Assembly (NCBI GenBank): GCA_020891255.1
Contig: BQFW01000001.1
Span: 1,984,001 to 2,048,000 of the forward strand
DNA length: 64,000 nt
Direction of reading: 5' to 3'
Origin: Entomortierella parvispora E1425
Lineage: Eukaryota; Fungi; Mortierellomycota
This document shows, one piece after another, positions 3,668 to 33,352 of the stretch (position 1 is its first letter; each line of letters opens with the position of its first letter). The notes below the pieces were generated by a model. It was not told the DNA's origin, did no database searches, and saw only the letters and a list, made by a program, of their open reading frames with translations. The position numbers were made by a program, and so were the translations under genes.

Positions 3668-4395
3668 AGAGTTTTTTTTTATTCCATCCCCTACTTTGCA
3701 ACGCCCTGTACATCACAATCTGTAATTCATACTTCTTAATAATAAATACCATTGAATTGACCTATTAAACGCGCTAGTATCGTCTTCTGGAGATGCGTCT
3801 ACAGGCCTTGGAAGTCCACGGTGTCTCATTTGGATGAACTGATGCCTTAGAAAGCTTCGCCCCGTAGATAACCTCAAATTCCGACTCTAGGTTGTTGCAA
3901 GGCGAGAGCAATTGAGCAATGGCCCCCAAAGTCCAACGACCAAAGGGAGATAATGCACCAAACAGTCTACCACGCACATACCACCCACCCCTCCTCTATC
4001 CAGACAGCAGGAGAAAGCAATAACATGGTATTATTCCGTTGGAAGCACTCAATGCCAAAGGAGACAAACCTTAACTCCGTTGGTGAATCCTCGGTAACGG
4101 TGGATTCTCGGTAGACGTGTATTTATATCTGACGTCCTTCGTCATCCAGCAGGGCTACTGTGTCAGGATCCCTTCCATCTAGCCTCACTCCAAGCGGACT
4201 CACTTGCGACGGCGACTAGTTCCCCACGATTTGGTATAAAAGTCAGCTCAGCAAGGAGGACGCCTTGATTTTCCTTCTTTTTTTTTCTCTTCAGACATTC
4301 TCCTCCCCTTCCAAAGCCCTTACGCTTCACAATCTCAAACGCCTCTCTCGCCCAGTGTCCCTCAACTCCTAATTCACCTCTCCCTAATCTTTATT

Positions 4396-5001: not shown

Positions 5002-6645
5002 GATACACAAAAAGAAATGGAAGGACCTAGCGCGAGACAAACAACAAAAGACTAGACAGTCTAACCTGTACACCGAAAAAGTGAGCCCCTGGAGGGAACA
5101 ACTTTTTTTTGGGGGCTGGAAACTTTCATATTCACTTCCTCAGTGCATGTTCTCTAATACCCTCTTCATAAAAATGCATTGACGTCATTACACTCTCCTC
5201 TTTGTAAACGGCTGCCCCTGCTTGAGAAACAGAAACAAGAACCCTTCTTTTGTACTCGTATGATTCACGCTCCATGACTTTATTTGCCTTTAGAGTGGAG
5301 AAGACCCAGACTTGAGAAGGCATACCGCTCTCTTCTTCTCTCTCCTTTGACCTCTTTCGTCAGTTGCCCTCATTGTCAAGCCCTGTGAAGGCCATAGAAA
5401 GATACAAGTCAGTCGGCTGGGCAGCAGGAGAAGAAGAAAGAGGAGAATGTGACGGATGAAAAAAAAAAAGAACTTGCGCTCTCAACTTTGTTGTTTCTCG
5501 GTGTTCCATTTTTTTCATTTCACTCAACTGCACTGTACCAGGTTCCTCCAAGACTCCACGCGCGCACATCCACCCCTTTGGAGGCGGGACGTGGGGGTGC
5601 GGGGCCAGCTGCTCTCTCTCTCTCTCTCTCCTCTTTCCATGCTGCTCTGAAATGGTGAGACAAAGCAACCAAGTCGATCTACTCGTGGCGATGTTTGAAT
5701 GAGGGGAAGAGGGGCACTGTGCCGGCGGTGCGCCACTGACCTGAATAGAGTTCAATTGCATTTGGGTCATCCTGCCCGTGACGACGACCCGAGAGTGAAT
5801 CTCGAGCAAGGGAGTCTCAGTCTGCATGTGCAGTACCGAGGCTAGCACTTTCTGTTTGCTTTCCTAAAGAAAGTCCGAAGTCGCAGCTGTCATCTTGTCT
5901 TTCTGTTCGCCGGCTGAATATGTATCTTGAGATCGATATCCAGTTTTCTGGACACACAGAGTTTTGCCCGTTGGACATTATTATTGACTTTGTGCAACAG
6001 GAGGACAAGACAACAGCTCTGCTGGTACAAATCTGTCCAGGCGCACCAGATAATCTTGATGCCCAGCGCCCGACGGGGAGTACTGTTGTCTCCAGGGTGG
6101 TTGGCAAGGATATTAGGTATGCAGACAACCTGGAGCTGTGTGCAGTAGCCTGCTAAGCCTGTAATCCTATTCAAGAGACGGCCATATCTGGCTGCCAACC
6201 CTCCTTTCTTCGATGAGAGCGCAAAGGTGCTTATTTTGTTCTCAACGCCCGTACCCAAAGAGGCAGAGGAGAGCCCTTTTTGAGAAATCCCCTGGGTTTG
6301 CTCTGCCCAATTGGACTCTCGCCCTGATATTTGGAGCAAGAGAAGAGTGCCATTCACCAAGAAAAGGCCAGAACAGACCTCTTTGTGAGCTCCATGCCTC
6401 TTTCCCGGCTGTCGTCCTCGGGGCGAGGTTGGGGCGCGCTGTCAAGGATAAAAACAACCTTCTCCTCTTCTCTTCTCTTTTCTTTTTCTTGTCATTCCTC
6501 ATTCCCTACCCTATCCCTCACGCCATTCCCTGCTTTTCCACTTTTTTGCTACAATAAAAAAGACCCCTTCATCACCTTTCACCTATCTTCGACCGTCCTA
6601 GACCTCCCTTCTACCCTCTACCTTTCTACCCTCCAATTACTCATC

Positions 6646-7443
6646 ATGAAGTTCACTCTCTCTGTCGCTGTCCTCGCCCTCGCCGCCTCCCAGGCCATGG
6701 CTGTTGTCCCCACTCCCATTAAAGGATGCACCAAGACCGTCATTGTCCAGCGTACGTTGTCAGTTCGTCGTTGCATCTCTTTATCACAAGAAAGATCTTT
6801 GCTGCCACGCTACCCTTCTCGATGCTGACCCATCCATACCCGTTTTTACTCTACCAACTCAATAGCCACCGACCTCTCTTGCGTCGACTTTGCTACTGCT
6901 AACGGCTGCACCTTTGACGACTTGCTGAAGTGGAACACCAGACTCAGCAAGGCCTGCGACAACCTCGGTAAATACTCAATCATTTTCTCGGCTCATCACT
7001 CAAATTGAGATCGCTACCATGAGGGGGAATACTTTCTTTATGAAAAAGTCACCATTACCTAACCACTCATTCGCCCCTTGTCCCTTGAACTAACGGTTCG
7101 ATCATTTTTCTTTTCTTCCCAAATATAAGACGTTGGCGCCCCCATTTGCGTTTCAATGACCCAAGGTGCCGCCAGCACTGGTGCCCCCACCAATGTCCCC
7201 ACCACCGCTGGACCCGCTCCCACCAACCCCGCTGGCTCTGTTCCCCCCACCAGCGCAGTAGGTACCCAGACCTCTGCTCCCGCAGGCGGCGCTACTGCTC
7301 CCGCCGGTGCGACTTCGTCCACTGCAAGCTCTGCCACCACTGCTCCTCCTAGCCCCAAGGCCACTAGCAGCGCCTCTGGAAGCAAGGCTTCGATGGCCCT
7401 TGCTGCTGCCGGTGTTCTCTTGTCGGTTGCCTATATGCTTTAA
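6646..7443 (+). CDS. Secreted GPI-anchored LysM protein, paralog 2; exons 6646-6751, 6866-6967, 7130-7443
   Basis: Signal peptide, then CTKTVIVQPTDLSCVDFATANGCTFDDLLKWNTRLSKACDNLDVGAPICVS after splicing two GT-AG introns. Same AAAGVLLSVAYML tail as paralog 1. Confidence 0.8.
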
Positions 7444-8412
7444 AGGATCTTTGATTGCATACCACGTTAGATGAATGAATAAAAAAAATGATGCAGTAAT
7501 ATAATCTGACACTCCAAAACTCCCGACCCATGTGCCATGCCCACGTCGGTTTTCTATCTTCTTGATCGAGTGGACCCTCTTGTCACTATGACTTCTTGCT
7601 GGTCTGCAGATGAGCACCTCCAGCTAGTGGCAGGTGTGAACAGCTCTCTCTCTCTCTCTCTCTCACGTTCCCGAGCAAGTTCTCGCGTCGGTTTCGGTCA
7701 AGATGTCTTATTTTCATCATAGGCAAAAACTGGCTAAAAGGCGCCTCCAGGTCCTAGAAAGAACGGAACCGGAGAAGTACGTCGTCTTGGCTCCTTCAAG
7801 TCCAAAACTCCATACTTTCATGAGGACTGGTGTTCCGGGTGATAAATAAGACTAAAATAAAAACCCTCGGCCCTCGAGCTGGACCCGGCAGATTGGTCCT
7901 TTTCAGTGCACGTTCTCTTGTGGGGCCTCTTATTCTCTTCAAGCGTGCACATTCGAGGCACTCTTGTGCGATAGTTGGGACAGCAATTATAGACGCATGT
8001 CGTTTTGAGGAGTTGAAAGATCAACTTCGGTTGCTGCTATTTACCCTCCTAACATGGCTGAACTCCCGGTAACATACATCTCCTCACTACTACAGGTACA
8101 GTTCTACTTTTGGCCACTGTGTCTCTATCAGGAGCTGATGCAGTCCATTAAAAGAGCTCTCTGCTGGAAACCGGTCTAAGGCTGGAACAGGTCTGATTTG
8201 GGGATTGATTCACTCACAGCGCTGGTGCAGGTTTAGGTAGTAGGACATTTCTCCGATGACCCAACAACTCTCAGACAGCGAATAACAAACAAAAGTAGTT
8301 GGAAGGTCAACCTTCTTTATTTTTACAATCAACCCTCGCGCAAAGGAAAAGATAGGTTCCTCGATCGGTCCATCTTCCTTCCGAGTTTTCCACACAGCTG
8401 TTTTTTTTCCCT

Positions 8413-10275
8413 TTAAAGCTTTGACTTCACCGATTCCTCGCCGTCCTCTTCTTGAGCAATCTCAAGAGCCAATCCGAAGACCGACTCGACCATCGCAGCA
8501 TATACCTTGGCCTCTGCAGAACTGGCCTGGCCTCTCGCCACACGAGCCTTAATACCATGCAAAATCACAGCCAACTAGTTTGCAGGAAAAAAAAGTATAG
8601 ATTTAGCGACAAGTTTTTTCCGTGAATTTTTTGCGTTCATATCTGTTGTTGCTAGATCAAACCACGAGACTTACTCTGAAGAACGAGAACGCAATACAGA
8701 ACAGCCAGTTCTTAATAGGGAATGGCCTGGAGGTTTGTTGACAATAACGCTCGAGCAGTACGTTGACAGGGGGGATGGGCAACTCGTTCTCTGGGATGCC
8801 TCGTAGTCCTCCCATGGGACTGCCAGACATCGCGGGAACGTAGTAAGGGTTCAAAAGGTTGGCCAGATCCGAGAATGGATGACCGATTGTTGAAAGCTCC
8901 CAATCCAGAATTCCAATTACACGAGGTTCCGTTGGGTGAAAGACCAAGTTATCCATCTAAAATACAAGAAAAGGACAAGACATGGAGCAATTGAGTACAG
9001 AGTCCCTTTCCGAACAAGAGTCAAAAGGGCACGGCACACACGCATAAAAGGTACCTTATAATCACCATGGACGATCGATGTCGAATCTGGCACCTCGTGG
9101 CTCTTGAACCAGGCCGACAACTCTTCCATGCCCTCGATCGCTCCAACTTCAACACCATCCTTGTCCTTGGCAGCCGCCTGAGCAGCAGAGACTTTGGTCA
9201 AGGATCCAATCTGGCGACGGTAGAATCCTGCTGGCTTTCCATAGCCCTCCAATCCAACGGATTTATAGTCCACCTTGTGCAATTTTGCCAAAGTATCCAC
9301 GGCGGAAATCCAGCTATTGTCATTCAATTGAAGGGGCACGTTTATCAGCATTCTACTTATTACTTCTGCAGCAATGAAAAAGCAGAGATGTCTGTGTCTG
9401 CACAAGCTCCTACCATAGTTTACGCTCCTCAAAGGGCAACTTGCTCAAGGTCACATCCGAAAAGATACGTCCCTGCAAAAACTCCATGACCTAGGAGACC
9501 CGCAAGAAACCACATGGTCAACTCCCATCGAAAGTACATTCTCATCAATTGCTGTGTAGTATCAACGATAAAGACGACAGAGATACAGCATAGTAGCTTC
9601 TCTCGTGGAATGCCGGGATTGTAGTTTCTTTTCTTACATAGAACGGCGTTCCAATGACAGATGCATCCTCGCAAAGGGTATAAACTTTAGGAACAGGGAC
9701 ATCTGAGTTCTCGCCCAGGGCCTTCAAGATCCTGAACTCTCTCTCGACGGCATGGGCAGTCGACGACAAGAGTGCTCCAGCAGGCTTCTTTCGAAGGACA
9801 TAACGAGTGTTGCTGTCAAGGAAATGATACATATTAGACCAATGGCTTTTGCCTTGCTCCGGCTCCAGCTCCACAAAAGGGAAAACATTGAGAATCCTCA
9901 CTCTAATACAGCTCAACATTTGAATCCATGAAAAAAACATACTTGGCATCGGTCAAAAGGTAGGTAGGGTTGCTTTGTCCGAGCTTGAACTGAGATACCT
10001 TGACAGGTGTGGCGAATCCTGGGACATTTTTGATCAGGTAAGGCTCAAGCAATGCTGGCTCAAGCTGATATCTGGGGTGTAGTCAATTAGAAGGGTGTCG
10101 TTAGCCAAGGTCCAGCTTGGGTAGGAGCGAGGGGTCACGGAGCGAACGCCGCCTTTCCTGACCCGAGAACTCGTATTTCATTCTGCATGTTGAATGCATG
10201 CAAAGTCTAATGAATAAAAGAAAAGTACCCTTTGCGCACATCTGTTGTGCTCTGACCATGCTCCTTGGGCGCCAT
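8413..10275 (-). CDS. Phosphotransferase (APH/choline kinase-like) family protein, stand-alone ACAD10/11 kinase-like domain, with PTS1; multi-exon
   Basis: Exons encode [58 protein letters not shown]. The last exon ends ...EESVKSKL*. Confidence 0.85.
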
Positions 10276-10752
10276 TGTGGAATGAGATGAAAGGGATAAG
10301 ATGGGATTGGGGAGCAGTGAATGAATGAATTGAGAAGTAGAAAAAAGAAAGAAAGAAAGAGAAAGAGAGGGAACGGCTCGCGTCTCTTCGAGCGATCCAA
10401 TCCAGTGTGGGGTACGGACACACACAGACACACGGACTGCACACAACCGATCACATCACAGCCCGCACACGGCCCGGCTTCGACGGCCAGCGCTCCGACT
10501 TGATCAAGACACAGACAAGGTTTCCCCGTCTTGCTCTTTCCCTGGAGGTGATCGGCGGGGTATGGTTGTAGACTATGTTTGTTGAAAACAAATATATCAT
10601 GGGTGGCAGCAATTGATGAGTACGACGACAACACACATCCACAAGAACATCTTCATCCTGTCAAAGACCAGCGTTTTTATTGAATCCGCATCATAAGGTG
10701 GGTTAAAAACAGTGTGGTCCCAAACTTTTTAAAAAAAAAGGAAAAAAGCTGC

Positions 10753-11257
10753 TTAGGCACGACGCTTGTCCTGGGGCTTGGCAAGGAAGTCGGTGTACTG
10801 CTGGTAAGGCGACATGGTGAACTTGGTCTCGGCCCAGAGGTCGGGGGTCAAGTAGCTGTAGGTGTTACCAATGGCAGCGAAGGTGGCCTTGACAAAGTTG
10901 CCCAAGGTGCGGGTGGAACCGAAAGCCTGGGTGTAGCAGTCAGTGACACCAGCGAGCTGGAGAAGCTTCTTGGGGACGGGGGCGGCGACGATGCCGGTAC
11001 CGCGGGGAGCAGGGACCAAACGGGTGACGGCGGAACCGCACTTTCCGGTGACCTTGCAGGGAACGGTGTGGGGCTCGTTCAAGATGGAACCCCAGTATCC
11101 GCGACGGACGGGGATGACCGAGAGCTTGGCGAGGATGATGGCACCACGGATGGCAGTGGCAACCTCCTTGGAGCACTTGACACCGAGACCGACGTGGCCG
11201 TTGGAGTCACCAATGACGACGAAAGCCTTAAAGCGGGTACGCTGACCGGCACGGGTC

Positions 11258-11292
<35 letters not shown>

Positions 11293-12123
11293 CTTGAGGG
11301 TAGGAAGGAAGTAGTCGACGATCTGGTACTCCTTGATGGGGAGAGAGAAGAGGTAGATCTGCTCGATCGACTGGATCTTGCGGTCCTTGACGAGACGTCC
11401 GAGCTTGGTGACGGGAGTCCAGGTCTCCTTCTCATCCTTGCCTCCACGTCCACGTCCACGGCCACGACCGCGGTCACCTCCGCGACCACGACCACGTCCA
11501 AAACCACCACGTCCTGTAAATTTGAAAATAGCGAGCAAGAAGGTGAACAAAGGTACTTAGTAAATGGTCCTTGAATTCCATGAAATGACCTAGTTGTATC
11601 CTGGCATCTGGTCCTGATTCTCAATGTGGATGATGGACTGCTTCAACAGCTGCTTTCCATCCACAATACATGTCGATCGTGATTCCAGGTAAATATCAGC
11701 GATCTATGGATCTGTGCCGCATCTCTTCAATTCATAGAGTCGGCTATGATGGTAGTAGCGAGTGACGATCGAAAGCTCCATTGACGAAGAGTTCAGACTC
11801 AATCATTGCGTCTAGGTCGGCTGCTCTACTGCGGCTAAGCCCATCTCCTCTTTGTCGGTCAGCTGCTCTGATGTGTCACAGGTTCAGACAATGAAGTTTG
11901 AACAATCCAGCTCATCCATGCCCACTGCAGCACTACAGCTGATGATCTAACCATGAGATCTCGTCTGATTGATTCCTTTGAAAAGTAACTGTCCTGATCT
12001 GATCGCAGAAAGATCTCATCCAAAGACGATTGGTGCCACTGTTTTCCTGATGAAGTCGTCCCACATATTGATTGCTGGCTTGCTGTTATTACCACGAGTA
12101 TCGGCCGTTGCTTGATCAGCCAT
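10753..12123 (-). CDS. RPS2: 40S ribosomal protein S2 (uS5); exon 1 12093-12123, then a ~575-nt intron
   Basis: RGG-rich N-terminus; [40 protein letters not shown]. Exon 1 encodes [10 protein letters not shown] followed by a GTAATA donor. Confidence 0.97.
11850..12020 (-). ncRNA. Candidate intronic H/ACA box snoRNA in RPS2 intron 1
   Basis: Sense-strand layout: a hairpin closed by ATGAGATCT/AGATCTCAT, H box AGATCA (ANANNA; 11943-11948), a second hairpin closed by TCAGCTG/CAGCTGA, then ACA at 11853-11855. Target not identified. Confidence 0.55.
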
Positions 12124-12690
12124 GTTCTATGGTGGAAAGAAATAAGTGGGGTTAGCAGAATGCTCATCACTAACGCTCGACGGGATGGATGGATGGACAC
12201 CAAGGAGGCCATCGCGATGGATGGCTCCAAAGCATCCATTGTCCACAGGCCACATGTGATTACATTTTCTTGAATTGTTTGAGCGAAAAAAAGAAGGAAG
12301 AATCAAGGGCCATTTGGCCACCGTCTTTATCTCGAATTCGAATCCCGACCTCAGCCACATTCCGTGCGCCACCAATCTCGTCTTGCCACCATTTTTTTTT
12401 TTTTTTTTTTTTTCACTCCTTCCTCTTCGACTTTAAAGATTACTTCTCTCGTGCCATTGGGTAAAGAGACACAGAGGCCCATAGTTAGATATTCGTCGCA
12501 GCAACTGAAAGGAACGATCAACTGCCACGATAGTAGTTCTAGTGACGATGCGACAGAACTGCGAGCGCCTGCTCGCCTGCAGAAGAATCAAAGTACGATG
12601 CAAAGGGTTATGTATTTGTTATGGTTGTGAATGTTGAAAATGTATACGTGGTTGTTTCTTTCTAGAGTAAGTGGAGCTAATACAACGCTT

Positions 12691-18815: not shown

Positions 18816-21242
18816 CTAGTTTCGGCTTTCGTGCCTTTGATCGGGGTGAACAATAAACTCGTGAAGTCCAGAAGCAGCTGGTGCCATTGGGTAAACATGC
18901 TCGGCCTTGCATACCTTAGCCTCCATCACAACAGGACCATCATGAGCGAGGAACTCGGCCATGACACCAGGCAAATCCTGCATATTGTGAGCGCGGAGAC
19001 CTTTGATGTTCATAGCCTCAGCCAGCTTGACAAAGTCGGGGTTGAACATTTGGGTACCGGAATAACGCTCTTCGTAAAAGAGATCCTGCCATTGCTTCAC
19101 CATGCCCTGGAAGTCATTGTTCAAGATCAGGACCTTGACACCGATGTTGTACTGGGCCGCGGTAGCGAGCTCCATTCCAGTCATGCAGAAACTGGCATCG
19201 CCATCAATATCAACAACAATATGATCAGGTTTGGCTACCTTGGCACCAATTGCTGCTGGAAGACCAAATCCCATAGTGCCCAACCCTCCAGAAGTGACGA
19301 GAGAGCGGGGATGGCGCCAGCGGAAGTACTGAGCCGCCCACATCTGATGCTGACCAACCCCTGTGGTGATGATAACTTTTTCCTTCATGTTCTCAGTCTG
19401 TTTGTTCAGTTCCTGAATCACAGTCTGGGGCTTCAAGATTCCGTTGGGATCCTGGACGTGGTAGAAAGGGAAGCGCTCCTTCCACTGGCCAAGCTTGCTG
19501 AACCATTCCTTGCGCTCTGAGCTCTCGATCAAAGGCAGGAGCTTTGACAGGTTCTCAGTGACGTCACCTTCAATGGCTTCTGTGGCCTGAACCACCTTGT
19601 TGATGTTCTTTGGCGAGATTTCAAAATGAATGATTCCTCCACGGTTTTCCGAGGCGGCTTTACGCGCTTCAGGGGCAAATCGAGGCACACTGGCCGTGAC
19701 ACGGTCATCAAAACGCGCTCCCAGGGCAATGACAACATCAGCACTCTGCATGGCCAAGTTTGCATAGGCAGATCCGTGCATACCCAGCATGTGAAGCGAG
19801 CGAGGATCCATTTCGTCGAATGCACCCAATCCTTGAAGGGTAGTCGTGACAGGGATGTTTCCATTATGGGAAAGCTCCTTGAGGCGAGCTGGGCCATCAG
19901 GGTGTGACAAAACACCTTGGCCGGCGTAAATCAGAGGTCGCTTGGCTGCGTTAATCAATTGAGCAGCTCGAAGGATCTGAGGCGAGGTGACCTGTGATGC
20001 ATCTTTGGCGAGTCCTGAGAAAAAGGGAGCCTGGCTGGCGGGGGGTCTTGCGGGCACGCTTGGTGCTGCTGGGATTGCCTTTGTCAAGATCGCGGCAGTG
20101 ACGTCCTTTGGAAGATCAACCAGGACAGGGCCAGGGCGTCCAGACGTAGCAATCTCGAATGCCTCATTGATGCGTCTAGGGAGATCGGCGATATCCTTAA
20201 CCATAACGTTCCACTTTGTGCAAGCACGAGAGATACCAACAACATCGGCTTCCTGGAATGCATCCGAACCAATGGCACCGACAACAACTTGTCCTGAGAA
20301 GACGACCATAGGGGTGCCATCTGACAGGGCATCCTGCATGGCTGTGATAACGTTGGTTGCTCCGGGACCTAGAAGAAGAAAGTAATTGATAGAAGTTTCA
20401 GCCGGCTGGGAGGGTAGAGTAAAAACCTGTAAGCTATCCATTGGTTGATGACCTACCGGAGGTGACAAGGACAACTCCGGGCTTTCCACTGTAAGATTGT
20501 CATGTGCACATGCAAAGGAGAGGAGACCAATAAGAGACACAAAAGGTTAATCTGATTGCCTCCGGAGAATAAAGTGGCAACGGCATGTTCTCCAGAAAAG
20601 CACAAGCCCACTCAAAACAAAAAAAAAAGAAAAAAATTCAATCGGCGGTTCCACCGAGATAAGCGAAACCATAAAAAGGAAAGTGACAAGGATGACTTAC
20701 GTGACTCGAGCATATCCTTCAGCGGCGTGTCCTGCTCCTTGCTCAGCTCTGGGCAAGATGAATTCGAAGTGCTTTGAGTTGTAGATGGCATCAAACACAG
20801 GCAGGATGGCGCCTCCAGGGTAGCCAAAAACATGCTTCACCTCATGTCTCAACATCATTTCGTGAAAGATCTGACCACCGGACATGCCGACGAACGAGTG
20901 GTCATGGCCAGGTTTGGACGCTCTCCTAGATGGAGCCTGAGACGGATGTTCCAAGGGCTGGAGGAGAGCGGAGGATGGATCGGCGATGATGCTACGTCAG
21001 GGCGAGCTCCTATGAGTACACGTTCTTTTTCATCTTTTTCTGACGCCCGCATTAATGAAGGGAGCAGAGGCTTACCTTGGTTGAGGGGGGGCCACCTCAA
21101 CAGTTGCAGCAGAGGAGCGGAAGCGAGCTTGGGAAGCTCCTACTTTTGGCGCCCTAGAAAGACTGTAGGCCTGAGTTCTGTAGTGCCTAGTTGCAGTCGA
21201 GAGCGAACCCCGAGCTAGGCGGGCAATTGGTTGTGCTTGCAT
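18816..21242 (-). CDS. ILV2: Acetolactate synthase (AHAS) catalytic subunit, mitochondrial; multi-exon
   Basis: Presequence MQAQPIARLARGSLSTATRHYR; FGYPGGAILP, GPGATN, DAFQEAD, GARFDDRVT, TSGGLGTMGFGLP, ThDP motif GDASF...LNN, GMVKQWQ. Confidence 0.96.
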
Positions 21243-21913
21243 GGTGTCTGTGTACCGAAAGGGAAAGGGCGCAGACAGAGGCTAAGAAAGGAAAAGAGTG
21301 GGGAGGTTTGCGAACAAAAAGCAGTTCGGGGGAACACAGGAGACAAAGTAATAGACAGCGTGTTGAAGAAGGTAGAAAGAGAGAAAAAAAAAAAAAGAGA
21401 GAAGAGGAGAGGAACTTCGATCGATCAAAAGTCCAACCCCCAAGCGCCCATCTCCTCCTTGGTTGACAAAGACATTCAAGCGAGCACCGAGCACCGAGCA
21501 CCGAGAATAAGGAGCAAGAGTCCGTCTCCACATTCTGGCCATCGTTGATTTTCATGTGTAATCCAAAAAGTCACTGTCGCGGCGACAGCAACGGTGCACC
21601 AGGCAGCGCGACCCTTGACACCAATTAGTCACAACACGCGATCCAATCAGCGCCCTGTCCCGATCAGTAGGACAATATCCCTGTGGCCATGACTGCCTTT
21701 CCTCTCCGCACCCTTATCTTCCGACTCATTTGCATGACCTGAATGAGTGGGCACCTCAATTGATCAATGCACAGGCACAAAGACAAAATTACAGGACAAA
21801 CCGCCAGATCACTTTATCGGCTCTCCTCAAGGACCCACAGCATTCACTCACTCCCGCCCGCAACCACACACGATTTTGTCCTCCATGGATCCGATCGGGT
21901 GCCTCCTCGTGCC

Positions 21914-21920
21914 TATATAA
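21914..21920 (+). promoter_or_regulatory. TATA box of ILV5
   Basis: TATATAA about 170 bp upstream of ATG 22087. Confidence 0.45.
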
Positions 21921-22086
21921 CAGAGCGAAACATCCCGGACATTTTTTTTTCTTTCTTCATCACTCTCATTCTCAGTCCTCCTTTCTTCATCGATCTAAAC
22001 CTTCGATACCCAACGATCTTCTTCCAGGACCTCCCCTCTCTCCACTCCTCTATTCCACCTTTTTCATTTATCTTAATTCTCACATC

Positions 22087-23390
22087 ATGAGCTTTATTGC
22101 CCGCTCCGCTCTCCGCCAGTTGACTCGCGTCGCTGCGCCCTCTACTCGCTCCTTCTCCGTTATGGCTCGCTCTGCTGCCATCACCCAGATCCCTCGCGTT
22201 GCTGCCTGCAAGGTAAAATAGACTCCTTTGATCAACTATATCTGTGCTCTGAGATATGTGCCTGAATATTCGTAGATCTCCTTTTGCACATCACTGACTG
22301 TAATAATCTTTGATCTTTGCAGGCTGCCTTCATCCAGACCCGTGGAGTCAAGACTATGGACTTTGGTGGCACAAACGAGGTTGTCTATGAGCGCACTGAT
22401 TATCCTGCTGCTAAGCTTCAGGAGACTTTCAAGAACGATACCCTCACTGTTCTTGGCTACGGTCCCATGGGACGTGGTCAAGCCCTTAACCTCCGTGACA
22501 ATAAGTTGAATGTCATCATTGGCTCCCGCAAGGGTGCTTCTTGGGACAAGGCCGTGTCTGAGGGTTGGGTTCCCGGAAAGACTCTTTTCGAGATTAACGA
22601 GGCCTGCGACCGCGGCACTGTCATCATGAACTTGCTCTCGGACGCTGCTCAGTCCAAGCTTTGGAACGAGATCAAGCCCTACCTCACCAAGGGCAAGACT
22701 CTCTATTTCTCACACGGATTCTCTGTCATCTACTCTGAGGACACTGGCGTTATTCCCCCTAAGGACATTGATGTCATCCTTGTTGCCCCCAAGGGTTCAG
22801 GAACTACTGTTCGCAACCTTTTCCTTGAGGGTCGCGGAATCAACGGATCTGTTGCAGTTTACCAGGATGTCTCTGGCAAGGCCAAGGAACGCGCTGTTGC
22901 CCTCGGTGTCGGTGTCGGCACTGGATACTTGTACGAGACCACTTTCAAGCAGGAGGTTTACTCTGATCTCTATGGTGAGCGCGGAGTGTTGATGGGTGCT
23001 ATCCAGGGTCTCTTCGTTGCTCAGTACGAGGTCCTCCGCGCTCGCGGACACACCCCCTCTGAGGCTTTCAACGAGACCGTGGAGGAGGCCACTCAGTCGC
23101 TCTATCCCTTGATCGGCGCGAACGGCATGGACTGGATGTATGCCAATTGCTCAACCACTGCCCAGCGTGGCGCCCTTGACTGGTGGAAGAAGTTCCATGA
23201 CGCTTCCAAGCCTGTCTTTGAAGAGCTCTACGAGTCTGTCGCCAACGGAACTGAGACCAGGAGGTCCCTCACCAAGAACTCTGCACCCAACTACCGCGCC
23301 GAGTTGGAGGCCGAGCTGGCCGAGATCGCCAACCACGAGATGTGGGTCACTGGCAGGTCTGTCCGCAAGTTGAGACCCGAGAACCAGTAA
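22087..23390 (+). CDS. ILV5: Ketol-acid reductoisomerase, mitochondrial; 2 exons
   Basis: Presequence MSFIARSALRQLTR; ALNLRD, NLLSDAAQ, FSHGFS, VAPKGSG, EVYSDLYGERGVLMG, SEAFNETVEEA, CSTTAQRGA. Confidence 0.96.
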
Positions 23391-23634
23391 ATTCTACATA
23401 GCACCCTGGACATCAGTCCGCTCTCTCATCTTCCTTCATAGACGGGTGTCCACCCTGCGATACATTCGCTTGTAAATTACCATAAAAATATATCATCGAA
23501 GTGCATGCATGACTTTATTTACCGTGACGACATCAATTTTTTTTTTTTTTTTGAGAATTACGGTTGGAAATCTTCCCACAGTCCAATTCTTCGGTTCCTG
23601 TTTCCTTTATCCATCACTGCCTTCGACAATCAAC

Positions 23635-25532
23635 ATGCTGCGAACGTTCCGAACCGCCGCCAAGGTGTCACCTTCATTCGTTGCCCAGAACCGCATTCGC
23701 ATGGTCAACGGTTGGCTCGGAGCCAGAGTCAATGTACGTTTATGGTGCTGTACCTGAACACAGAATGTTATTTTACAGACGCGCTTCCAGGGCTAATGTG
23801 TATTGCTGCTCCCCTGGACATTTTAACCATGTCATTAGATGTCTACCACCGCTGCGAAGGATGCCCCTGAGGTAATTTCGTCATTTCATTACATTCAGTA
23901 GAGGCGGTTGAATTGCAAGCCTTGAACTGGACCAAAATACTCACCTCAATATGTTTTTACCAGGCCGATGTTTTGCACCGGAAGCATCTTTCCAGCAGGA
24001 CCTTTGTTCTCAACAGACCCAAGGCCCTGAACGCTTTGAACTTGAGCATGGTCCGCAACATGACCCCTCAGCTGCAGGTCAGTTCCTTGTCATTACTCAC
24101 CGATCAATCCTAAAAGCATGATCCAGGGACAGACCCGCTAATATTTTACTCGATCCACCTTCCGTTGGAATAGGCCTGGGATGCTTCGGATCTTTGCAAA
24201 GTTATTGTCATCAAAGGATCAGGAGAGAAGGCTTTTTGCGCTGGTGGAGATGTTCGTCAGGTCGTCGAGCTGGCCCAAAACAAGAAGCATGACGAAGCAT
24301 TGGCTTTCTTTGCCGAAGAGTACAAGCTGAACCACATGATCGCCACTTTGAAGACCCCATTCGTCGCCATTCTTAATGGCATCACCAGTATGCTGACAGT
24401 GACATTTAGGACATGATTTGGAGAAAAAATGTACACGATTACTGACATTTCCGCGTTTGTTTGTTTATAGTGGGTGGTGGCGTTGGACTCTCTGTTCACG
24501 CTCCTTTCAGGATTGCCACCGAGAAGACATTGTTTGCGATGCCTGAGACCAACATTGGATTGTTCCCTGATGTTGGAGGATCGTTCTTTTTGCCTCGCTT
24601 GGATGGTGAGACCGGCACATACCTTGGCCTCGTTGGCACCCGCCTTAAGGGCATTGACACTGTGTAAGAAGCTGGATGGACAAGTATACTGGAACGCTCT
24701 GTCGCAAGCACGCACTTTTACTCACGTCACATGCATGTCTGTTTGAAACTTTAGCTATGCTGGAATTGCCACCCACTACGTTCCTTCTGAGCGCTTGGTT
24801 GCATTGGAGGACCGTCTCAGCGAATTGGAAACTGACAACCACGACGTGATCAACATGGCAATTGAGGATTTCGTCAGCGAGCCTCTTCACGATCACAAGT
24901 ACGCTATCTCTGACAACCGTAACGCCATCGACCGTTGCTTCCGTTTCAACACCATCGAGGAAATTGTCGCCGCCTTGGAGCAGGAGAACACCGACTTTGC
25001 CAAGAAGACCTTGAAGACCCTTCGATCTGTCTCCCCTACTTCCCTCAAAATTACCCTCCAGCAGATCCGCGAGGGCGCACATCTTGGTATTGCCGACTGC
25101 TTCAGAATGGAACACCAATTGGCCCGCGAGTGCTTGTATGGCAATGACTTTGCTGAGGGTGTCCGTGCGTTGTTAATCGACAAGACCAACGAGCCCCACT
25201 GGCAGCCTCCCACTATCGAGGCTGTTGACCGCGAGCAGATGCTGGGACAGTACTTCAGAAACGAAAGTCCCGTGCCTCTTGAGCTCTCGAGCACGACCAC
25301 ATACAACGAGTACCCTTACAGACGTTATGGTCTCCCCACGGAGGACGAGATCCGCTCAGTTGTGACTGGTGAGGCCGAGGGCAGTGGACCTTTGCAGTTG
25401 ACTGCTGAAGAGGTCGCTGATGTTTTGGTCAAGAAGAGCGGAGGCAAGATTGGTGTGCGCGAAAAGGTCATGGAGGTCCTTTCGCGCAAGGTCAGCAAGG
25501 GCGCTGAGGGCGAGCTCAAGTGGATCGACTAG
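23635..25532 (+). CDS. HIBCH: 3-hydroxyisobutyryl-CoA hydrolase, mitochondrial (crotonase family; HIBCH/EHD3-like); multi-exon
   Basis: Presequence [10 protein letters not shown]; [76 protein letters not shown]. Confidence 0.93.
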
Positions 25533-25913
25533 AATGAAGGCGTAGAAAAAAATCCAGATACATGTACACAGTAAAATTAGTTATCCTATCCTAATTACCT
25601 TAAGTTGTTTGTGAAACGAGGCCTTATCTTGCGCCCTATGGAAGCAGTCCGACGTGAGTAATACTGGTCATGAACTCTGTCGAAGAAAACGCTCCACAGA
25701 CCAGTCAACTTACTGTTGGACTGACTCGCCTCGAGCTCTTTCATGTGCCGTTCGTTGCCCTCTCTGTGGTACAGAACCCTTCTCTCATCGCACTAGATCG
25801 ATTCGTCCCTCGGTCTGTGCCTGGTTCTTTCTTGTTTTAAAATCTACGATTCGCCTCTTGTTTTTTTCACTCTTTCCTTTCAAATCGCCCCGACCCCTCT
25901 GTTTTTTTTCCCA

Positions 25914-27080
25914 ATGTGGTCCAAATTCTTGACCACGGCCACTAAGGCTCCTCAGGTGCGTTGCCAACAACCTCTGCGACCCCCCTTCTCTTAACCAGCA
26001 ATGGAACGCAGGAACCATACTTCTAAACCGCGATCCTGACTCTTTTCCTTCTTCGTCCACGTTGTCCACAGGTTGCCTCCAATGCAGGATCGCTCATGGC
26101 AGCCACCGCCGTCCGATCGCATCGAGTCATGAACCCAGTCTTTGCGCGACAGTCTTCCTCTTCGACGTCAGCCATCTCTTACAAAAAATCGCATCCTCAC
26201 AAGCGTCACCCAGCCTTGACCTCGCAATATCTCCACCCAGCCCCACCTTCAGCAGAGGAAGCCGTCTCCAACATTCTTTACAACACACCACCCATTGGAC
26301 GAGGCCAGACCAAGCAGCGTCATATCTTCAACTGTTTGGTTCAGAACGAACCTGGAGTGCTGAGTCGTGTCTCTGGTATTCTTGCAGGACGAGGCTTCAA
26401 CATTGACTCGCTCGTGGTCGCAAAGACTGAGGTTGCAGACCTCAGTCGTATGACGATTGTTCTTCGTGGCGAATCTTCCACAATTGAACAGGCCCGGAGG
26501 CAATTGGAGGACTTGGTAAGAAAACAAGACATGGATCACCCCCCGTTTTATTTTCCTTTGGTCACAGTCTCCCTAATCTCACCTCTTTCTTTCTCTCACG
26601 ATCCATTTTCAGGTGCCAGTGTGGGCGGTCTTGGATTACACTGGATTCAAAGTGATTGAGCGCGAGTTGTTGCTGATCAAGGTCTCGATCTTGGGACCAG
26701 AGCATGTCCGGGCCCAGATGACATCTCGTCAACCCAACAACTGGCAACTGGTCCATGAGGAAGCTGAGGACGATATGACGCCCTCGAACGCGTTGCGTCA
26801 GACACACGCTCATCTCAAGTCCTTGACTGAGCTTGCGAGGCTGTTCCAAGGCAAGGTTGTGGATGTCAGCGGTGAATGTGCTGTGATCGAGTTGTCGGCC
26901 AAGCCTGATCGTGTAGATGCGTTTGTGAAGCTGGTTAAGCCCTTTGGTATCTTGGAGGCCGCAAGAAGTGGAATGATGGCCATGCCTCGTTCGCCCATCT
27001 ATGACCGCCACGAGAACGAGGACGATGAGGTCCAAGAGGAGGGATCCGGTGTGGATGCCTCGTTGTTGCCTCCTGGATAA
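25914..27080 (+). CDS. ILV6: Acetolactate synthase regulatory (small) subunit, mitochondrial; 3 exons
   Basis: ACT domain HIFNCLVQNEPGVLSRVSGILAGRGFNIDSLVV; VPVWAVLDY; RELLLIKVS; FGILEAARSGMMAMPR. Confidence 0.96.
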
Positions 27081-27539
27081 AAAAAAAAAAGCGTCAATGA
27101 ACCAACACCCTTGTAAAAAAAAAAGTACTGCTTGCTACGATAATAAAAAGTGACAACATATTCCCACAATCTAAACTTGCATCGATCTGCGTTCCAACAT
27201 GGTCGGCCAACAGCCACAAGATTGAGTCAAGACAGTAAATTTTTTGAACGATTCCTTCGCCTTGAGTGACACTGCGCCAGTGGGTGATAAGAGTCAACGG
27301 ACTGTCAGGAGAATTTGCTGAAGGAGCAACAACGACGACAGCACTACGACAGATCGCCGAGGTGATACGCCCACGGATGCCAGCAAGAGGAATATCCGGA
27401 GGCGATCTTTTGACAACAAACACCGTGTTGTGGGGATGAACCAAAAGGGCGCTAGAGAGGAATCGGTCCGTCGACAGCAGCGACGGCAGCGACGGCAGCG
27501 ACAGCGTACACACAGAGCACCGAGGTTGATCCGGAGACA

Positions 27540-27630
27540 CATAGCAGACAAGACAGACAAGACAGACACACAGACACAGACAAGGCAAACAGACAAGGCA
27601 GAGAGACAGACAGACAGACAGACAGAGGCA
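27540..27630. repeat. Compound (GACA)n/(CAGA)n microsatellite between ILV6 and the LEU2 fusion
   Basis: Runs such as gacaagacagacaagacagacacacagacacaga and gagagacagacagacagacagacaga. Confidence 0.8.
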
Positions 27631-27869
27631 GGCAGCCCAAAAAGACAGCAAACAGTCATAACTCACACAGGCCCCTTTTAGGTTTGTGATGGATGCGGGT
27701 GTGTGGTGCGAGTGCTTGCATGGGATTTGTGCGAGCGATAGGCGGATAGACTCATGTGGGTCACTGATTCTGCTCTGCCTGTGATTGTCCCCTGCTGATC
27801 CTATGCCAAATGCGGAAGAGATGCCCCGAGGTCGCCGAGACTGGCTGCATGTAGGCCGAAGGGCGAGCG

Positions 27870-27876
27870 TATAAAG
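27870..27876 (+). promoter_or_regulatory. TATA box of the LEU2-dehydratase fusion gene
   Basis: TATAAAG about 265 bp upstream of ATG 28136, followed by a long pyrimidine tract. Confidence 0.45.
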
Positions 27877-28135
27877 AGACGGCCGCTCGTCGTCGCCCTC
27901 TTCTTCTTCTTCTTCTTCTTTTTCCTTATACTCATCATCCTCTTCTCTCTCTTCCCCTCCTCTCCCCAGTCCTTCTTTCTCCTTGGCGAGCTTCTTTCTA
28001 TTTGATCTACATCTTTCTTGCTCCTCAATCCGATCTCTCTTGTTCGTTCATACCCCTTTCTGACAAAGTAACGAAACAGCTGTACACTTTTCCCACCCTC
28101 CTCCCTTTTCTAAAACAACCTCCCCCATATACACA

Positions 28136-31100
28136 ATGACCGTTACCCCCAAGCAGTCCACAGTCGTTCTCTTGCCCGGAGACGGAGTCGGTCCCGAGGT
28201 AATTGCCGAGGCCAAGCGCGTCCTTGAGCTTGTTGCCCAAGTCCGCCAACACAAGGTCCAGATCACATTCAAGGAAGAGCTGATCGGCGGTGCTTCTATC
28301 GATGCTTCTGGTAAGTCCCTGGTTTCCCTCTTCTTTTTCTTTCCCCTTGGTGCAGCAGTGGATAACAAAAGAGATGGGTGGGAGGTACAAGCGCAAGCGC
28401 AAGTCGAGTTTATTCATGCAAACGCTACGAAAAGGAGATAGCAGGCGGCGATGTGGGGCCACGAAAGAGTTTACCTTAACTAGGTGACTGACTGACACAC
28501 AATTGGCTCGGATTCTAATCTCGCTGCTCCCATTGAACCATAGGCACTGCGCTCACGGAAAAGGCTCTTGCTTCCTGCAAAGCCGCAGACGCCATTCTCC
28601 TCGGTGCAGTAGGAGGCCCCAAGTGGGCCACTGGAAACCCCAGACCTGAGCAGGGCCTCCTCGCTCTCCGAAAGAGCCTTGATCTCTATGCCAACCTCCG
28701 CCCCTGCACCTTTGCTTCGGACGCCCTCATCTCACACTCACCTCTCAAGGAATCAATCGTAAAGGGAGTCGATTTCATGATGATCCGCGAGTTGGTTGGT
28801 GGCATCTACTTTGGTGACCGCAAGGAGGCCACCGAGGAGGATGGCTATGCCTATGATACCCTTCCTTACTCAAGGGCCGAGGTTGAGCGTGTCACTCGTC
28901 TCGCCGCCGCGTTGGCTCTCCAGCACGAGCCTGCCTGGCCAATTCACTCGATCGACAAGGCAAACGTCCTTGCCTCCTCTCGTCTCTGGCGCAAGACTGT
29001 CACAGAAGTCATTGAGAAGGAGTTCCCTCAGCTCAAGGTCAACCACCACTTGGTCGACTCTGCCGCCATGTTCTTGGTCAAGAACCCTCGCGGATTGAAC
29101 GGTGTCATTTTGACTGAAAACATGTTTGGTGATATTCTCTCGGACGAGGCATCGGTCATCCCCGGATCCCTCGGACTCTTGCCCTCTGCCTCCTTGAGCG
29201 GTCTTCCTGAGAAGGGCAAACCTTGCTTGGGAGTCTATGAGCCTATTCACGGATCAGCACCCGATATCGCTGGCCAGGGAATTGCCAACCCTGTCGGTAC
29301 CATTCTTTCTGCCGCCATGTTGTTGCGCTACTCTCTTGACATGGAAGCCGAGGCCGTTGCCATTGAGGATTCTGTCCGCAAGGTCTTGGATGACGCTGAT
29401 CGTGCTGGATATGCCTTCCGCACCCGCGATTTGGGCGGTAACAAGTCCACCAAGGAGATGGGTGACAAGATCTTGGAGGTTCTCGAGAAGGAGCTCTACG
29501 GTCTTAACGCCGCGGAGGGGGCTCCCGTTTTCCGCCCCTTGGCCATTGGCCGCCCCGCTGGTCGCCGTGGAATGACCATCTCTGAAAAGATTATTGCTCA
29601 CAACGCCATTGGTCTTTCCGCACCTGGAAATGTTAAGCCTGGCGATATGGTTTGTGTTTCAGTAGACTGGACTTTGGCCTCCGAATTGACCTGGAAGGGC
29701 ATGGACAAGACTTACGACTCTATGGGCCGTCCTTCGGTCTACCGTAACGATCGTTTCTGGCTCGCCATTGATCACACTGTCGACCCCAGCATCAACCATC
29801 TCCCCAAGCCCACCGAGCTCATCAAGGCCTCGACCGACTTTGCCAAGGAGGCCAAGCTTATTGATTTCTATGGCGCCAACTACTCCATTCTTCACACCGA
29901 GTTCTACCGTGAGCGTGCTCAGCCTGGTCAGATGATCATTGGTGCCGATTCTCACTCGTGCTCTGCCGGTGCTGTTGGTGCCTTTGCTGTCGGACTCGGT
30001 GCTGCTGATGTTGTGATGCCTTTGGTCACTGGTGAGACGTGGTTCAAGGTTCCCGAGACTGTCGAAATTCGCTTTGTGAACCAGCCTCCTTTCGGTATTG
30101 GTGGAAAGGATGCCATTCTCTATGTCCTCCAGCAGCTCAAGCGCAACACTGTTGCCTTCGAGCGCTCTGTCGAATACACTGGACCTGGTCTCAAGCACTT
30201 GTCTTGCGATGCCCGCTTTGCCTTGTCCAACATGGCCACTGAGTTTGGTGGTATTGCTGGTGTGTGCGAGGCTGATGAGACTACTGCCGCCTACATTGCC
30301 AAGCGCAAGAACCCTCAGCACAAGAACTCTGCCCTGTACTTCAAGGCCGATGAGGATGCTGAGTATGCCGAGACCCACATTATCGATTTGTCCAAGGTTG
30401 AATCTTTGGTCGCCTTGTACCCCGATCCCGATAACTGCGTCGATGTGGATGCCTGCGCCGGAACCAAGCTCGATGGATGCTTCATTGGAGCCTGCACAAC
30501 TGCCGAAGAGGATTTGATTTTGGCTGCTTTGGTCTTGGAGGCTGGTCTCAAGAAGGGTCTCGTCCCTGCTTTGGGAGGCAAGCGTAAGGTTACCCCTGGA
30601 TCCGTCCCAATTGTTGCCAAGCTCCGTCGCTTGGGATTGCTCAAGATCTACGAGCAGGCTGGTTTCGAGATTGGTGCTCCTGGATGCTCTTACTGCATTG
30701 CTGTCGCTGCCGATCAGGCTGGTGAGGGTGAGGTTTGGTTGTCTTCTCAGAACCGTAACTTCCGTAACCGCATGGGCAAGGGTGCCATCGGTAACTTGGC
30801 CTCGGCCGCCACTGTCGCTGCTTCTGCCTTTGATATGAAGATTCGCAACCCTCGCGATCTTTTGGACAGCATTGACCGCGTTCGTTACGAGGAGATGTTG
30901 GAGCAGTGGATTGAGAAGGGCAAGCCTGTCGTCTACTCTGAGCCCGCTCCCATCCTTTACAACGCCGCCACCGACAGCGGTTCCCTCCCTGCCCCTCCTC
31001 CTTCGTTCTCGGCCACCATCACTGGACGCGTCCAGCGCTTTGAGGACAACATTGATACCGATGCCATCATCCCCGCCCAATTCATGCCCGGAACTTCAGA

Positions 31101-31611
31101 CAAGGACTTGGGTACCCACGCTTTCCAGTTTGTTAAGCCCGAATTCAGGGAGTTGGCCGCTCAGGGTTACGACATTGTGGTCGGAGGCAGTGGTTTTGGA
31201 TCTGGTTCGTCTCGTGAGGAGGCTCCTCGTGCTCTTTTGGGTGCTGGCATTAAGGCCGTCATTGCCAAGTCGTACGCTTTCATCTATGCCCGTAACCAGC
31301 CCAACATGTCGTTGCTCGGAATCACCATCGAGGACGAGTCCTTCTATGAGCATGCTCAGGAGGGAGCTGAGATCTCGATTGATGTCAAGGAGCGCAAGGT
31401 GCACTGCGGCGGTCAGGTCTATCCCTTTGGTTTGTCTTTGATGGAGGAGCGTCTCTTGGCCGGAGGTGGTGTCACTGAGATGTACAAGACCTACGGCAAG
31501 CAGTTGTTCCGTGTCGCCACTGCTCCCGAGGCCAAGTCCAGCTCATGCGGAACTGAAGTCAAGGCTGCCTCCAAGAGCAACTGCGGCGATGACAGCGAAC
31601 TCGCCTGGTAA
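28136..31611 (+). CDS. LEU2: Fusion protein of 1080 aa: 3-isopropylmalate dehydrogenase + aconitase-family (isopropylmalate-dehydratase-like) large and small subunits; exons 28136-28310, 28544-31611
   Basis: IPMDH motifs [68 protein letters not shown]. The same frame continues without a stop into [53 protein letters not shown]. Confidence 0.92.
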
Positions 31612-31752
31612 ACCAACATCATTTGCAAGCATTCATAAACCCAACTCAATAAATGTATATAATTGTCATTGTTATAAAAACGCGAGCGTCATGGTATTGT
31701 AAAAAAAAAAGGTGATGTTGAAAAGCTAAGAGGGCGAAGAATTATTTTCTGT

Positions 31753-33352
31753 TTACTGCTCCTTCTTGGTTTCCTCCTTGGTCTCCTTGTCGTAGTAGCG
31801 ATCCAACACTTCCTTTGTCCACTCGCCAAAGTTTCGACCATCTTCGGTAACGATGGTCTCGAGCGAGGGCTGCATGAAGACTGCAAAAGTGTTGCGAGCC
31901 AAGGTTGAGTAGCGAGTAGGATCCTCTTCAGGGGCAGTGGCGCCACGAACGCAATGGGGCGTTGCGGCCAAGAGACCTCTGGTCGCCAACTGAAGAGCCT
32001 CTCCTGTCTGGAAAGCGAGATGGTCTCTTGGGATCGAGGCCTTGATTACCTCTTGACCACGGTTACGAATGTAAAGACCAGCATCAGGGTCTGGGCAAGC
32101 GACTTCCTTCAGTGTCAACTTGCCGTCCTCCGAAACCTGCGACTCATCAATGAACATGGCGCTGGTCAGCCCAGTAAGAGATCCATGATCCAAATGCCAT
32201 CCACACCAAGAATCCATGTCATCCTTCTTTTCCGTGCTTGCACCATCCTCGGTAGCTGTGGTTTGAGGGTAGTAGTGCAAAAGACGGGCTTTCGTGGTCT
32301 TTGACTTTTCAATCACGTCCTGAAGATGAGTTGCAGAAAAGGATCCGTGGGCCAATTTGGCAGCCACAAAGGCATCGCAGGCCTTGCCGACCAATTTACC
32401 GACTCCCACAATGAACTGGCCCAACTCCTTGAAAGCGACCTCCAGCTCTGGCAAGTCATCCGAGGGCCACACGTTAGGGTGGCAGTACTCTGGGAATTGC
32501 TCCTGAAGTGTTTTGGAAGCCTCGGGCTCATCGATCACAGGGTTGGCATAGTAACTTCCCTTGGACAAGTCTAAACCACGGACCAAATGAAAGAAGGTAA
32601 AAAAAAAAGTGGGTCAGAGAGGCGTCCAACAACAAAAATCCGGGGTATGCATGATCCAACGTCGCACAATTGCCAAATCGGCGGCATTCTCGTTTGAAAA
32701 ATAACAACGGCGGAGGTACTTTTGCAAATGTACTCCAGCGAAGTGGTCCGGTTCAATCGTCCGGAGGTCCCATCCTTTAAGCATCATGGATGAGTCCAGA
32801 AATCAACTTTCCCACGCCTTCCCTCCCTTCACCCCCCACAGTTTTTCCCACACAGCAGAGGTGAATGCGTGCTCCAAGTTGAGATGTCCGTTCTCCGTGG
32901 CACACAGAAGGCATACCTGGCTTTCCATTCATGATTTCTTTGCCACAGCTCCAGCCAAAGCTGTAACGACTGTCCGCATGGACCGTCTTTTCCTTGACTT
33001 CCTCTGGCAAAGCAGCAAAAACAGAAGCCAATCTCAAGAGTCTTTCACGTTTGGCCAGATAGTCCGAGGGCAGGTTCTTGACCAACAAAAGTCCAAGACA
33101 AGAGTCGTGGGCACCAAAGGCTCTCTCGATGTCAGAGGAGATGTCCTTGTTCGAGACCAAGTCCTGGTAATCAATCACAACGACTGAGTTTGGGTTCTAG
33201 ATGGATGTTTTTTTTTAAAAAAAAAAGAAAAGTCCAAGGGAAAGAAACAGAGTACAGAAAGGGTGAGGTTCAGTTTTTTTTGTTCAATTAGTTTTGGAGC
33301 TGACATGCATGTAGTAGCCAAGTACGGTCGAAATATAATTTACCGAAGCCAT
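31753..33352 (-). CDS. 2-oxoglutarate/Fe(II)-dependent dioxygenase-like (clavaminate synthase-like fold); multi-exon, first exon ATG GCT TCG
   Basis: DIOX_N-like VVVIDYQDL...GLLLVKNLP; YSFGWSCGKE; KGSYYANP; ARLLHYYP; HxD motif WCGWHLDHGSLTGL; distal His ATPHCVRG. Confidence 0.88.

Follow-up and report, generated by a model that had tools for sequence, protein, structure and literature searches.

The window analysed here, a stretch of 64,000 nucleotides from contig BQFW01000001.1 of Entomortierella parvispora E1425, contains on its + strand, at 28136-31611, a two-exon gene that encodes one 116-kDa protein, in which a LEU2-type 3-isopropylmalate dehydrogenase (IPMDH) is joined to a complete dehydratase (large domain plus swivel small domain). 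This protein is best explained as a cytosolic bifunctional isopropylmalate (IPM) isomerase/dehydrogenase of the leucine-specific branch, a reading to which we assign a probability of roughly 60%. In the proposed mechanism, the C-terminal ~680-700 residues would function as a single-chain [4Fe-4S] dehydratase, converting 2-isopropylmalate via isopropylmaleate into 3-isopropylmalate, and the N-terminal ~380 residues would catalyze the NAD-dependent oxidative decarboxylation of 3-isopropylmalate to 4-methyl-2-oxopentanoate. Because IPMDH is normally dimeric, the holoenzyme is expected to be a dimer bearing two dehydratase modules, and its Fe-S cluster would probably be inserted by the cytosolic Fe-S assembly (CIA) machinery, recognizing a flexible tail that ends in Trp. 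The isopropylmalate assignment is favoured because of the LEU2-orthologous partner, the existence of relatives carrying an isopropylmalate synthase (IPMS) domain, the identity of the nearest solved enzymes, a specificity loop without Arg, the location in a branched-chain amino acid (BCAA) gene cluster, the conservation of the dehydratase and its invariant residues. The fusion joins two known enzyme types, is old, is not peculiar to this genome, and is already visible in databases, where its members are labelled 'isopropylmalate dehydrogenase' or 'aconitate hydratase'.

Exon 1 (28136-28310, + strand) begins with the ATG at 28136, carries the first 58 1/3 codons of the IPMDH domain, including the GDGVGPE NAD-binding motif (28178-28198), and ends in GCTTCTG/GTAAGT. 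It is followed by a phase 1 intron of 233 nt (28311-28543, GTAAGT...CCATAG), whose in-frame read-through contains stops, and by exon 2 (28544-31611), which runs uninterrupted for 3068 nt to the TAA stop at 31609-31611. The spliced coding sequence of 3243 nt gives 1080 amino acids with a computed mass of 116.0 kDa, in agreement with an initial annotation of this DNA that had described one 5' intron, an uninterrupted 3068-nt exon and a single polypeptide of ~117 kDa. Across the splice junction (IDASG/TALTEK), the protein aligns without gaps to the annotated orthologues P0001 and P0121. Pfam matches comprise Iso_dh in residues 9-57 of exon 1 (profile positions 1-47) and residues 2-309 of exon 2, Aconitase in 377-762 (248 bits), and Aconitase_C in 871-930 (58 bits). 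Because the IPMDH profile already begins at residue 9, the protein has no N-terminal extension or presequence, as had been proposed. The strong codon bias reported earlier is even along the gene, with an effective number of codons (ENC) of 37 for the whole and 35-39 for each of its three parts, versus 44-61 for most neighbouring genes; the adjacent ketol-acid reductoisomerase (KARI) gene alone is similar (ENC 36). An assembly or annotation artefact is ruled out because the open reading frame (ORF) is kept across phyla.

The rest of the IPMDH domain occupies 28544-29499 (+ strand). Exon 2 alone, with exon 1 left out, scores 412.4 bits against the TIGR00169 leuB equivalog model (cut-off 353.2). 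The IPMDH motifs were all found ([35 protein letters not shown] and [12 protein letters not shown]), those for substrate and metal lying at 28666-28704, 28786-28815, 28954-28971, 29053-29070 and 29119-29154. The substrate, metal and NAD motifs, including the two Arg of [41 protein letters not shown], are mostly invariant or nearly invariant in alignment A1, and the catalytic residues are intact, as the initial annotation had stated. Standalone fungal LEU2 proteins share 60-68% identity with the domain, and the N-terminal ~380 residues are a true orthologue of fungal LEU2, as judged from a maximum-likelihood IPMDH-domain tree that follows the fungal phylogeny and has standalone LEU2 nested among fused forms.

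A linker of ~24 residues ([25 protein letters not shown]; 29500-29571), modelled by AlphaFold2 (AF2) with a predicted local distance difference test (pLDDT) score of ~71-85, leads into an aconitase-family large-subunit-like domain of archaeal LeuC/HacA-like type (29572-30858), which starts with MTISEK at 29572. This domain contains the motifs AIDHTV, ILHTEF, GADSHS, SNMATEFGG and SQNRNFRNR, and the Fe-S cysteines of FIGACTT (30481-30501) and GCSYC (30682-30696). A second linker of ~50 residues (30859-31014, pLDDT 69-81) connects it, in LeuC-then-LeuD order, to the small-subunit-like swivel domain (31015-31482), which carries the specificity loop F-M-P-G-T within 31054-31095 and the catalytic GSGSSRE at 31198-31218. 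The coding sequence closes with a C-terminal helix and a disordered tail (31483-31611), ending in ...CG...CGDDSELAW before the TAA. These borders coincide closely with those suggested previously (IPMDH to about 29500, a short linker, the large subunit from near 29570 and the small subunit from near 31020). The structure prediction that the initial annotation had proposed gave a mean pLDDT of 84.6 and a predicted template modelling (pTM) score of 0.82, with residues 997-1021 below 50, which suggests a defined arrangement of the modules.

In a residue-by-residue alignment, each Fe-S cysteine and each catalytic residue of the two dehydratase domains has its counterpart in Methanocaldococcus jannaschii LeuC/LeuD (4NQY), 4KP2 and pig aconitase, in support of the three cluster ligands previously assigned to FIGACT and GCSYC, and the catalytic Asp-His, Asp-Ser-His, Asn/Glu, Asn-Arg..Arg and GSSRE residues are all present. 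The best-scoring models belong to the archaeal-type LeuC/HacA families (PRK00402, 314 bits versus a cut-off of 385; hacA_fam, 279 versus 386; IPMI_arch TIGR02086, 276 versus 410). By these scores the dehydratase is assigned to the archaeal-type (type II) LeuC/LeuD-like lineage, and not to the orthologues of LEU1. The LeuB-LeuC-LeuD designation given earlier therefore holds for the architecture, but not for a LEU1 ancestry of the dehydratase (TIGR00170, 142 versus 560). Among solved structures, the best matches are those of the M. jannaschii IPM/citramalate isomerase (200 bits for the large and 88 bits for the small subunit), with homoaconitase marginally behind (193 and 81 bits). The small-subunit loop described as a specificity determinant in IPM isomerase (IPMI) and homoaconitase enzymes (PMC7308503) reads FMPGT here, versus YLVYT in the archaeal isomerase and YLRTT in homoaconitase, and thus lacks Arg. 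Homoaconitase and aconitase identities were ruled out by this loop together with the profile scores, which fall below cut-off for homoaconitase (fungal TIGR00139, 195 versus 530; HacA_Meth, 236 versus 550) and for aconitate hydratase (PRK07229, 282 versus 612; TIGR01342, 227 versus 719).

Conservation of the dehydratase is at least as high as that of its partner, the two being 75-79% and 62-64% identical, respectively, to their counterparts in Glomeromycota. The cluster ligands and the catalytic Asp, His, Ser and Arg residues are invariant in 35 diverse sequences, and conservation extends to the GSSRE motif and the specificity loop. The fusion is under strong purifying selection, and both enzyme modules are intact.

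The C-terminal tail may connect the protein to cytosolic cluster assembly. A C-terminal [LIM]-[DES]-[WF] on a flexible tail has been reported as a signal for the CIA machinery, whose clients include yeast Leu1 (bioRxiv 10.1101/2023.05.19.541488). The present tail ends in L-A-W, in which the terminal Trp and the hydrophobic residue at -3 match the motif, and the Ala at -2 lies outside it. Nearly all eukaryotic members end in Trp, on a tail that is disordered in the AF2 model, and the bacterial relatives do not; the terminal Trp resembles this candidate targeting signal. The tail at 31534-31608 (here [23 protein letters not shown]) has the majority consensus CG-x9-CG-x5-LAW across phyla in the last ~30 columns of A1, so that two conserved Cys-Gly pairs precede the terminal Trp.

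The search for this architecture across genomes, also proposed in the initial annotation, showed it to be widespread in early-diverging fungi and present in some protists. The fusion is retained in >100 species of several phyla, with a frame that is open without stops across the junction, and is vertically inherited. The three-domain proteins measure ~1040-1120 amino acids and are 88-94% identical in essentially all Mortierellaceae genera. At 60-75% identity, they occur in Glomeromycota, Endogonales, Calcarisporiella, Zoopagomycota, Entomophthoromycota, chytrids, Neocallimastigomycota, Blastocladiomycota, Sanchytriomycota and Neolecta; outside Fungi, the fusion was found in a nucleariid, a choanoflagellate, Physarum, a euglenozoan and Ancoracysta. 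Several complete fused ORFs derive from transcriptome assemblies of other lineages, where the fusion is thus carried on a single mRNA. Fusarium, Clonostachys and other Pezizomycotina have a divergent fused paralogue (~50% identical overall, ~40% in IPMDH), which may serve specialised metabolism. At an Aspergillus sydowii locus (8906-12295), an Iso_dh model of 379 amino acids overlaps the start of a 'standalone' aconitase-family model of 719 amino acids, and the pair is probably one fused gene split by annotation; a PEP_mutase/ICL-family gene, P450 genes and a fungal transcription factor lie nearby. A full-text literature search, with most subscription journals outside its reach, found no published description or characterisation of the fusion, in keeping with the earlier statement that no characterised example was known.

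Six proteins of 1340-1573 amino acids (P0098, P0103, P0108, P0109, P0112 and P0114), from Leptophrys vorax (Rhizaria) and metagenomic eukaryotes, contain an additional N-terminal domain, which scores 507 bits as bacterial-type 2-isopropylmalate synthase, versus 252-292 as homocitrate synthase and 183 as citramalate synthase. It comprises the IPMS catalytic part only, without the leucine-binding regulatory domain. In locus L010, for example, one ORF (585-5261) combines the IPMS catalytic domain, IPMDH and the two dehydratase domains. As predicted from their domains, such proteins would place the whole leucine-specific branch on one polypeptide. Close prokaryotic relatives are limited to two metagenome-assembled genomes (MAGs), one from Calditrichaeota and one from an unclassified bacterium, among 185,579 species genomes. 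These bacterial proteins (646-647 amino acids) are ~53% identical over the dehydratase region and ~60% over the large domain, and both nest inside the eukaryotic sequences in the dehydratase tree, suggesting that the dehydratase may have passed from a eukaryote to bacteria. Neither MAG relative sits in a leu operon, and their gene context gives no functional clue; a second aconitase-like gene is located 7 kb away on the Calditrichaeota contig.

The IPMDH-domain tree mixes fused and standalone sequences. Standalone M. alpina falls inside the fused Mortierellaceae, the standalone sequences of Umbelopsis and Mucorales are sister to fused Endogonales, fused Neolecta branches between Saitoella and Pezizomycotina (both standalone), and standalone Basidiobolus is sister to fused Syncephalis. 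Because fused and standalone forms interleave in a tree that matches the fungal phylogeny, the fusion is reconstructed as ancestral to Fungi, with the standalone LEU2 of Dikarya, Mucorales and M. alpina arising through at least five independent truncations. Within the fused clade, the dehydratase gives a congruent tree. Beyond Fungi, the fusion is either older than the kingdom or has spread among eukaryotes. The 'aconitase family' standalone proteins of Mucorales, yeasts and Aspergillus form a separate paralogue group in the dehydratase tree; with their different specificity loop and different gene context, this rules out the standalone dehydratases of Mucorales and Dikarya as fission products. 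One such paralogue in Umbelopsis sp. PMI_123 (locus 5155-10022; 673 amino acids, loop IDKCIAD) adjoins a PrpD/MmgE gene, a PEP_mutase/ICL-family gene, a Zn-cluster regulator and a carboxyl transferase, a cluster that may belong to a methylcitrate-type or other organic-acid pathway.

Mortierella alpina is reported to have two partly duplicated clusters, ilvB-ilvF1-ilvE1 and ilvF2-ilvE2-leuB1, and a leucine-repressed homologue of canonical LEU1, LeuA2 (E=0 against yeast); its LeuB1 was treated as a plain IPMDH, with the fusion unmentioned (PMC8880518). LeuB1 (P0122, 381 amino acids) is 89-91% identical to the IPMDH domain of E. parvispora and ends exactly at the linker. At its locus (1468-10669), KARI, the small subunit of acetohydroxyacid synthase (AHAS) and leuB1 are followed by a 2-oxoacid dehydrogenase E2 gene, and no dehydratase remnant was found at the locus downstream of leuB1. 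On these comparisons, M. alpina represents a recent natural truncation of the fusion, and because it is truncated naturally, the dehydratase part is dispensable where a canonical LEU1 is present. The loss fits functional redundancy, and also a different, non-essential function. Canonical LEU1-type isomerases have been reported in Mucorales (PMC2904702), A. nidulans (PMC8262921) and M. alpina (PMC8880518), and the independent losses of the dehydratase alone where such an isomerase is reported fit redundancy of function.

The fusion belongs to a BCAA block at 18816-33178 of the window, which includes the AHAS large subunit (18816-20540, - strand), KARI (22317-23390, + strand), an ECH_2/HIBCH-like gene (24795-25532, + strand) and, upstream of the fusion, the AHAS small subunit (26096-27080, + strand), and which ends after the fusion with a DIOX_N-like gene (31753-33178, - strand). 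The gene order is identical in Mortierella sp. GBAus27b. In Calcarisporiella, the AHAS small subunit still adjoins the fusion, and no AHAS/KARI linkage was seen at the fusion loci of Geosiphon and Synchytrium. The Calcarisporiella thermophila locus (4762-8928) also contains two BCDHK_Adom3 (branched-chain ketoacid dehydrogenase kinase-like) models just upstream of the fusion, together with the AHAS small subunit. Elsewhere in the window, an ORF at 2777-3667 carries a LUD domain (LutC/YkgG-like).

The strongest competitor, which we consider rather unlikely, holds that the IPMDH half is the housekeeping LEU2, while the fused dehydratase acts on another 2-hydroxy-acid, such as citramalate (2-methylmalate), on a route from pyruvate via 2-oxobutyrate to isoleucine, or another alkylmalate, the IPM step being performed by a canonical LEU1 elsewhere. 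Several observations weigh in this direction and against isopropylmalate as the substrate. The dehydratase misses all the curated cut-offs of the IPMI, homoaconitase and aconitase models, including, in addition to PRK00402 (314 versus 385), TIGR02083 (246 versus 611) and TIGR00170 (142 versus 560). Its loop, FMPG[TVIK] across the family, is without characterised precedent and differs from that of the four-domain fusions, and the occurrence of related standalone paralogues in PrpD/ICL-type clusters points to diverse substrates in the family. The leucine-prototroph M. alpina lives without the domain and has a leucine-responsive canonical LEU1 homologue (PMC8880518); the fused domain is thus perhaps not the principal isomerase. 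Moreover, the nearest enzyme of known structure is a dual IPM/citramalate isomerase, and the cluster neighbours are genes shared by isoleucine and valine synthesis. On the other hand, the condensing domain of the four-domain relatives is of the IPMS type and not of the citramalate synthase type, the dehydratase is fused to a strict leuB equivalog, and a threonine deaminase (IlvA), which already supplies 2-oxobutyrate, is listed for M. alpina (PMC8880518). Of the bifunctional enzyme put forward in the initial annotation, what stands is the presence of two intact modules in a fusion kept by >100 species; the missed IPMI cut-offs and the M. alpina LEU1 leave room for a second activity that is redundant or directed at another substrate.

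That the fusion exists only at the DNA or mRNA level, two separate proteins being produced through an internal start at Met402 (MTISEK), processing of the linker or an alternative 3' end, is very unlikely. Met402 does match the Met with which archaeal LeuC begins, and the consensus retains it; in addition, M. alpina LeuB1 stops exactly at the linker. RNA matches came from two soil metatranscriptomes only (6% of words), in which short contigs 90-95% identical to the gene, from relatives, cover both halves; that no contig spans 29425-29524 also counts against a single protein, but this gap reflects short contigs from other organisms rather than a mapped transcript end. The open frame across the junction in >100 species of several phyla, the complete fused ORFs in transcriptome assemblies, and the compact AF2 model (pTM 0.82) with a moderately confident linker all argue for one protein. 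Least probable of all is a catalytically idle dehydratase serving as an Fe-S-dependent regulatory or scaffold domain for IPMDH, comparable to IRP1-type moonlighting: its dispensability in M. alpina, its repeated loss and a reported link between leucine synthesis and iron status in Aspergillus would suit such a role, but the cluster ligands and catalytic Asp/His/Ser/Arg are invariant in the 35 diverse sequences, with the GSSRE motif and the specificity loop conserved.

The bifunctional isomerase/dehydrogenase proposed here can be compared with several known systems. Fungal LEU2 and bacterial LeuB (TIGR00169) share their motifs with the fusion, which scores above the cut-off of that model and adds a C-terminal dehydratase of ~700 residues; judging from the tree, the standalone LEU2 genes appear to have arisen from the fused form by truncation. 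Fungal LEU1 resembles the dehydratase half in the reaction proposed for that half, in the LeuC-then-LeuD order within one chain, in its cytosolic location and in its C-terminal Trp tail, but it belongs to a bacterial-type LeuC-linker-LeuD subfamily, is not orthologous and is not fused to LEU2. The M. jannaschii IPMI LeuC/LeuD (4NQY/4KP1, 3VBA) and homoaconitase HacA/HacB (4KP2, 2PKP) have the same catalytic residues and Cys ligands, but are heterodimers of separate subunits with the loops YLVYT and YLRTT, whereas the window protein is one chain with FMPGT and lies below the archaeal cut-offs. The four-domain proteins have the same IPMDH-large-small order and are ~50% identical, but include the extra IPMS domain and a different loop, AQ[RLH]ML[DV]R. 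The pentafunctional AROM protein catalyzes consecutive steps of amino-acid synthesis in one cytosolic polypeptide; the principle is the same, although the enzymes differ and AROM is characterised while the fusion is not. M. alpina LeuB1 shares the KARI/AHAS-small neighbourhood, but is a standalone protein of 381 amino acids (PMC8880518).

A broader evolutionary scheme is possible, though on balance doubtful. The fusion, extended in some protists by the IPMS domain into a three-step 'leucine synthase', would represent the ancestral leucine branch of eukaryotes, or at least of Fungi, and would channel 3-isopropylmalate. Yeast LEU2 would then be a truncated relic, and the bacterial-type LEU1 a replacement that permitted at least five losses of the fused isomerase.

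Both LEU2 and LEU1 are textbook genes that serve as standard markers, and leucine synthesis has been proposed as an antifungal target. For the databases, the findings mean that the names 'isopropylmalate dehydrogenase' and 'aconitate hydratase' now given to these proteins need correction. Should the fused isomerase prove active, two consecutive steps of leucine synthesis would run on one protein in most early-diverging fungi, among them arbuscular mycorrhizal fungi, biotechnological Mortierellaceae, chytrids and insect pathogens, and the two-gene arrangement of Dikarya would be derived. The family would then offer a natural system for studying the fusion and splitting of pathway enzymes and the channelling of intermediates, its repeated, datable fissions would provide a clean phylogenetic character, and its ORFs would constitute a compact two- or three-step module for engineering 2-oxoacid elongation. 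The most notable implications are that LEU2 itself may be a truncated relic of a larger enzyme, and that four-domain relatives may carry the entire leucine-specific branch.

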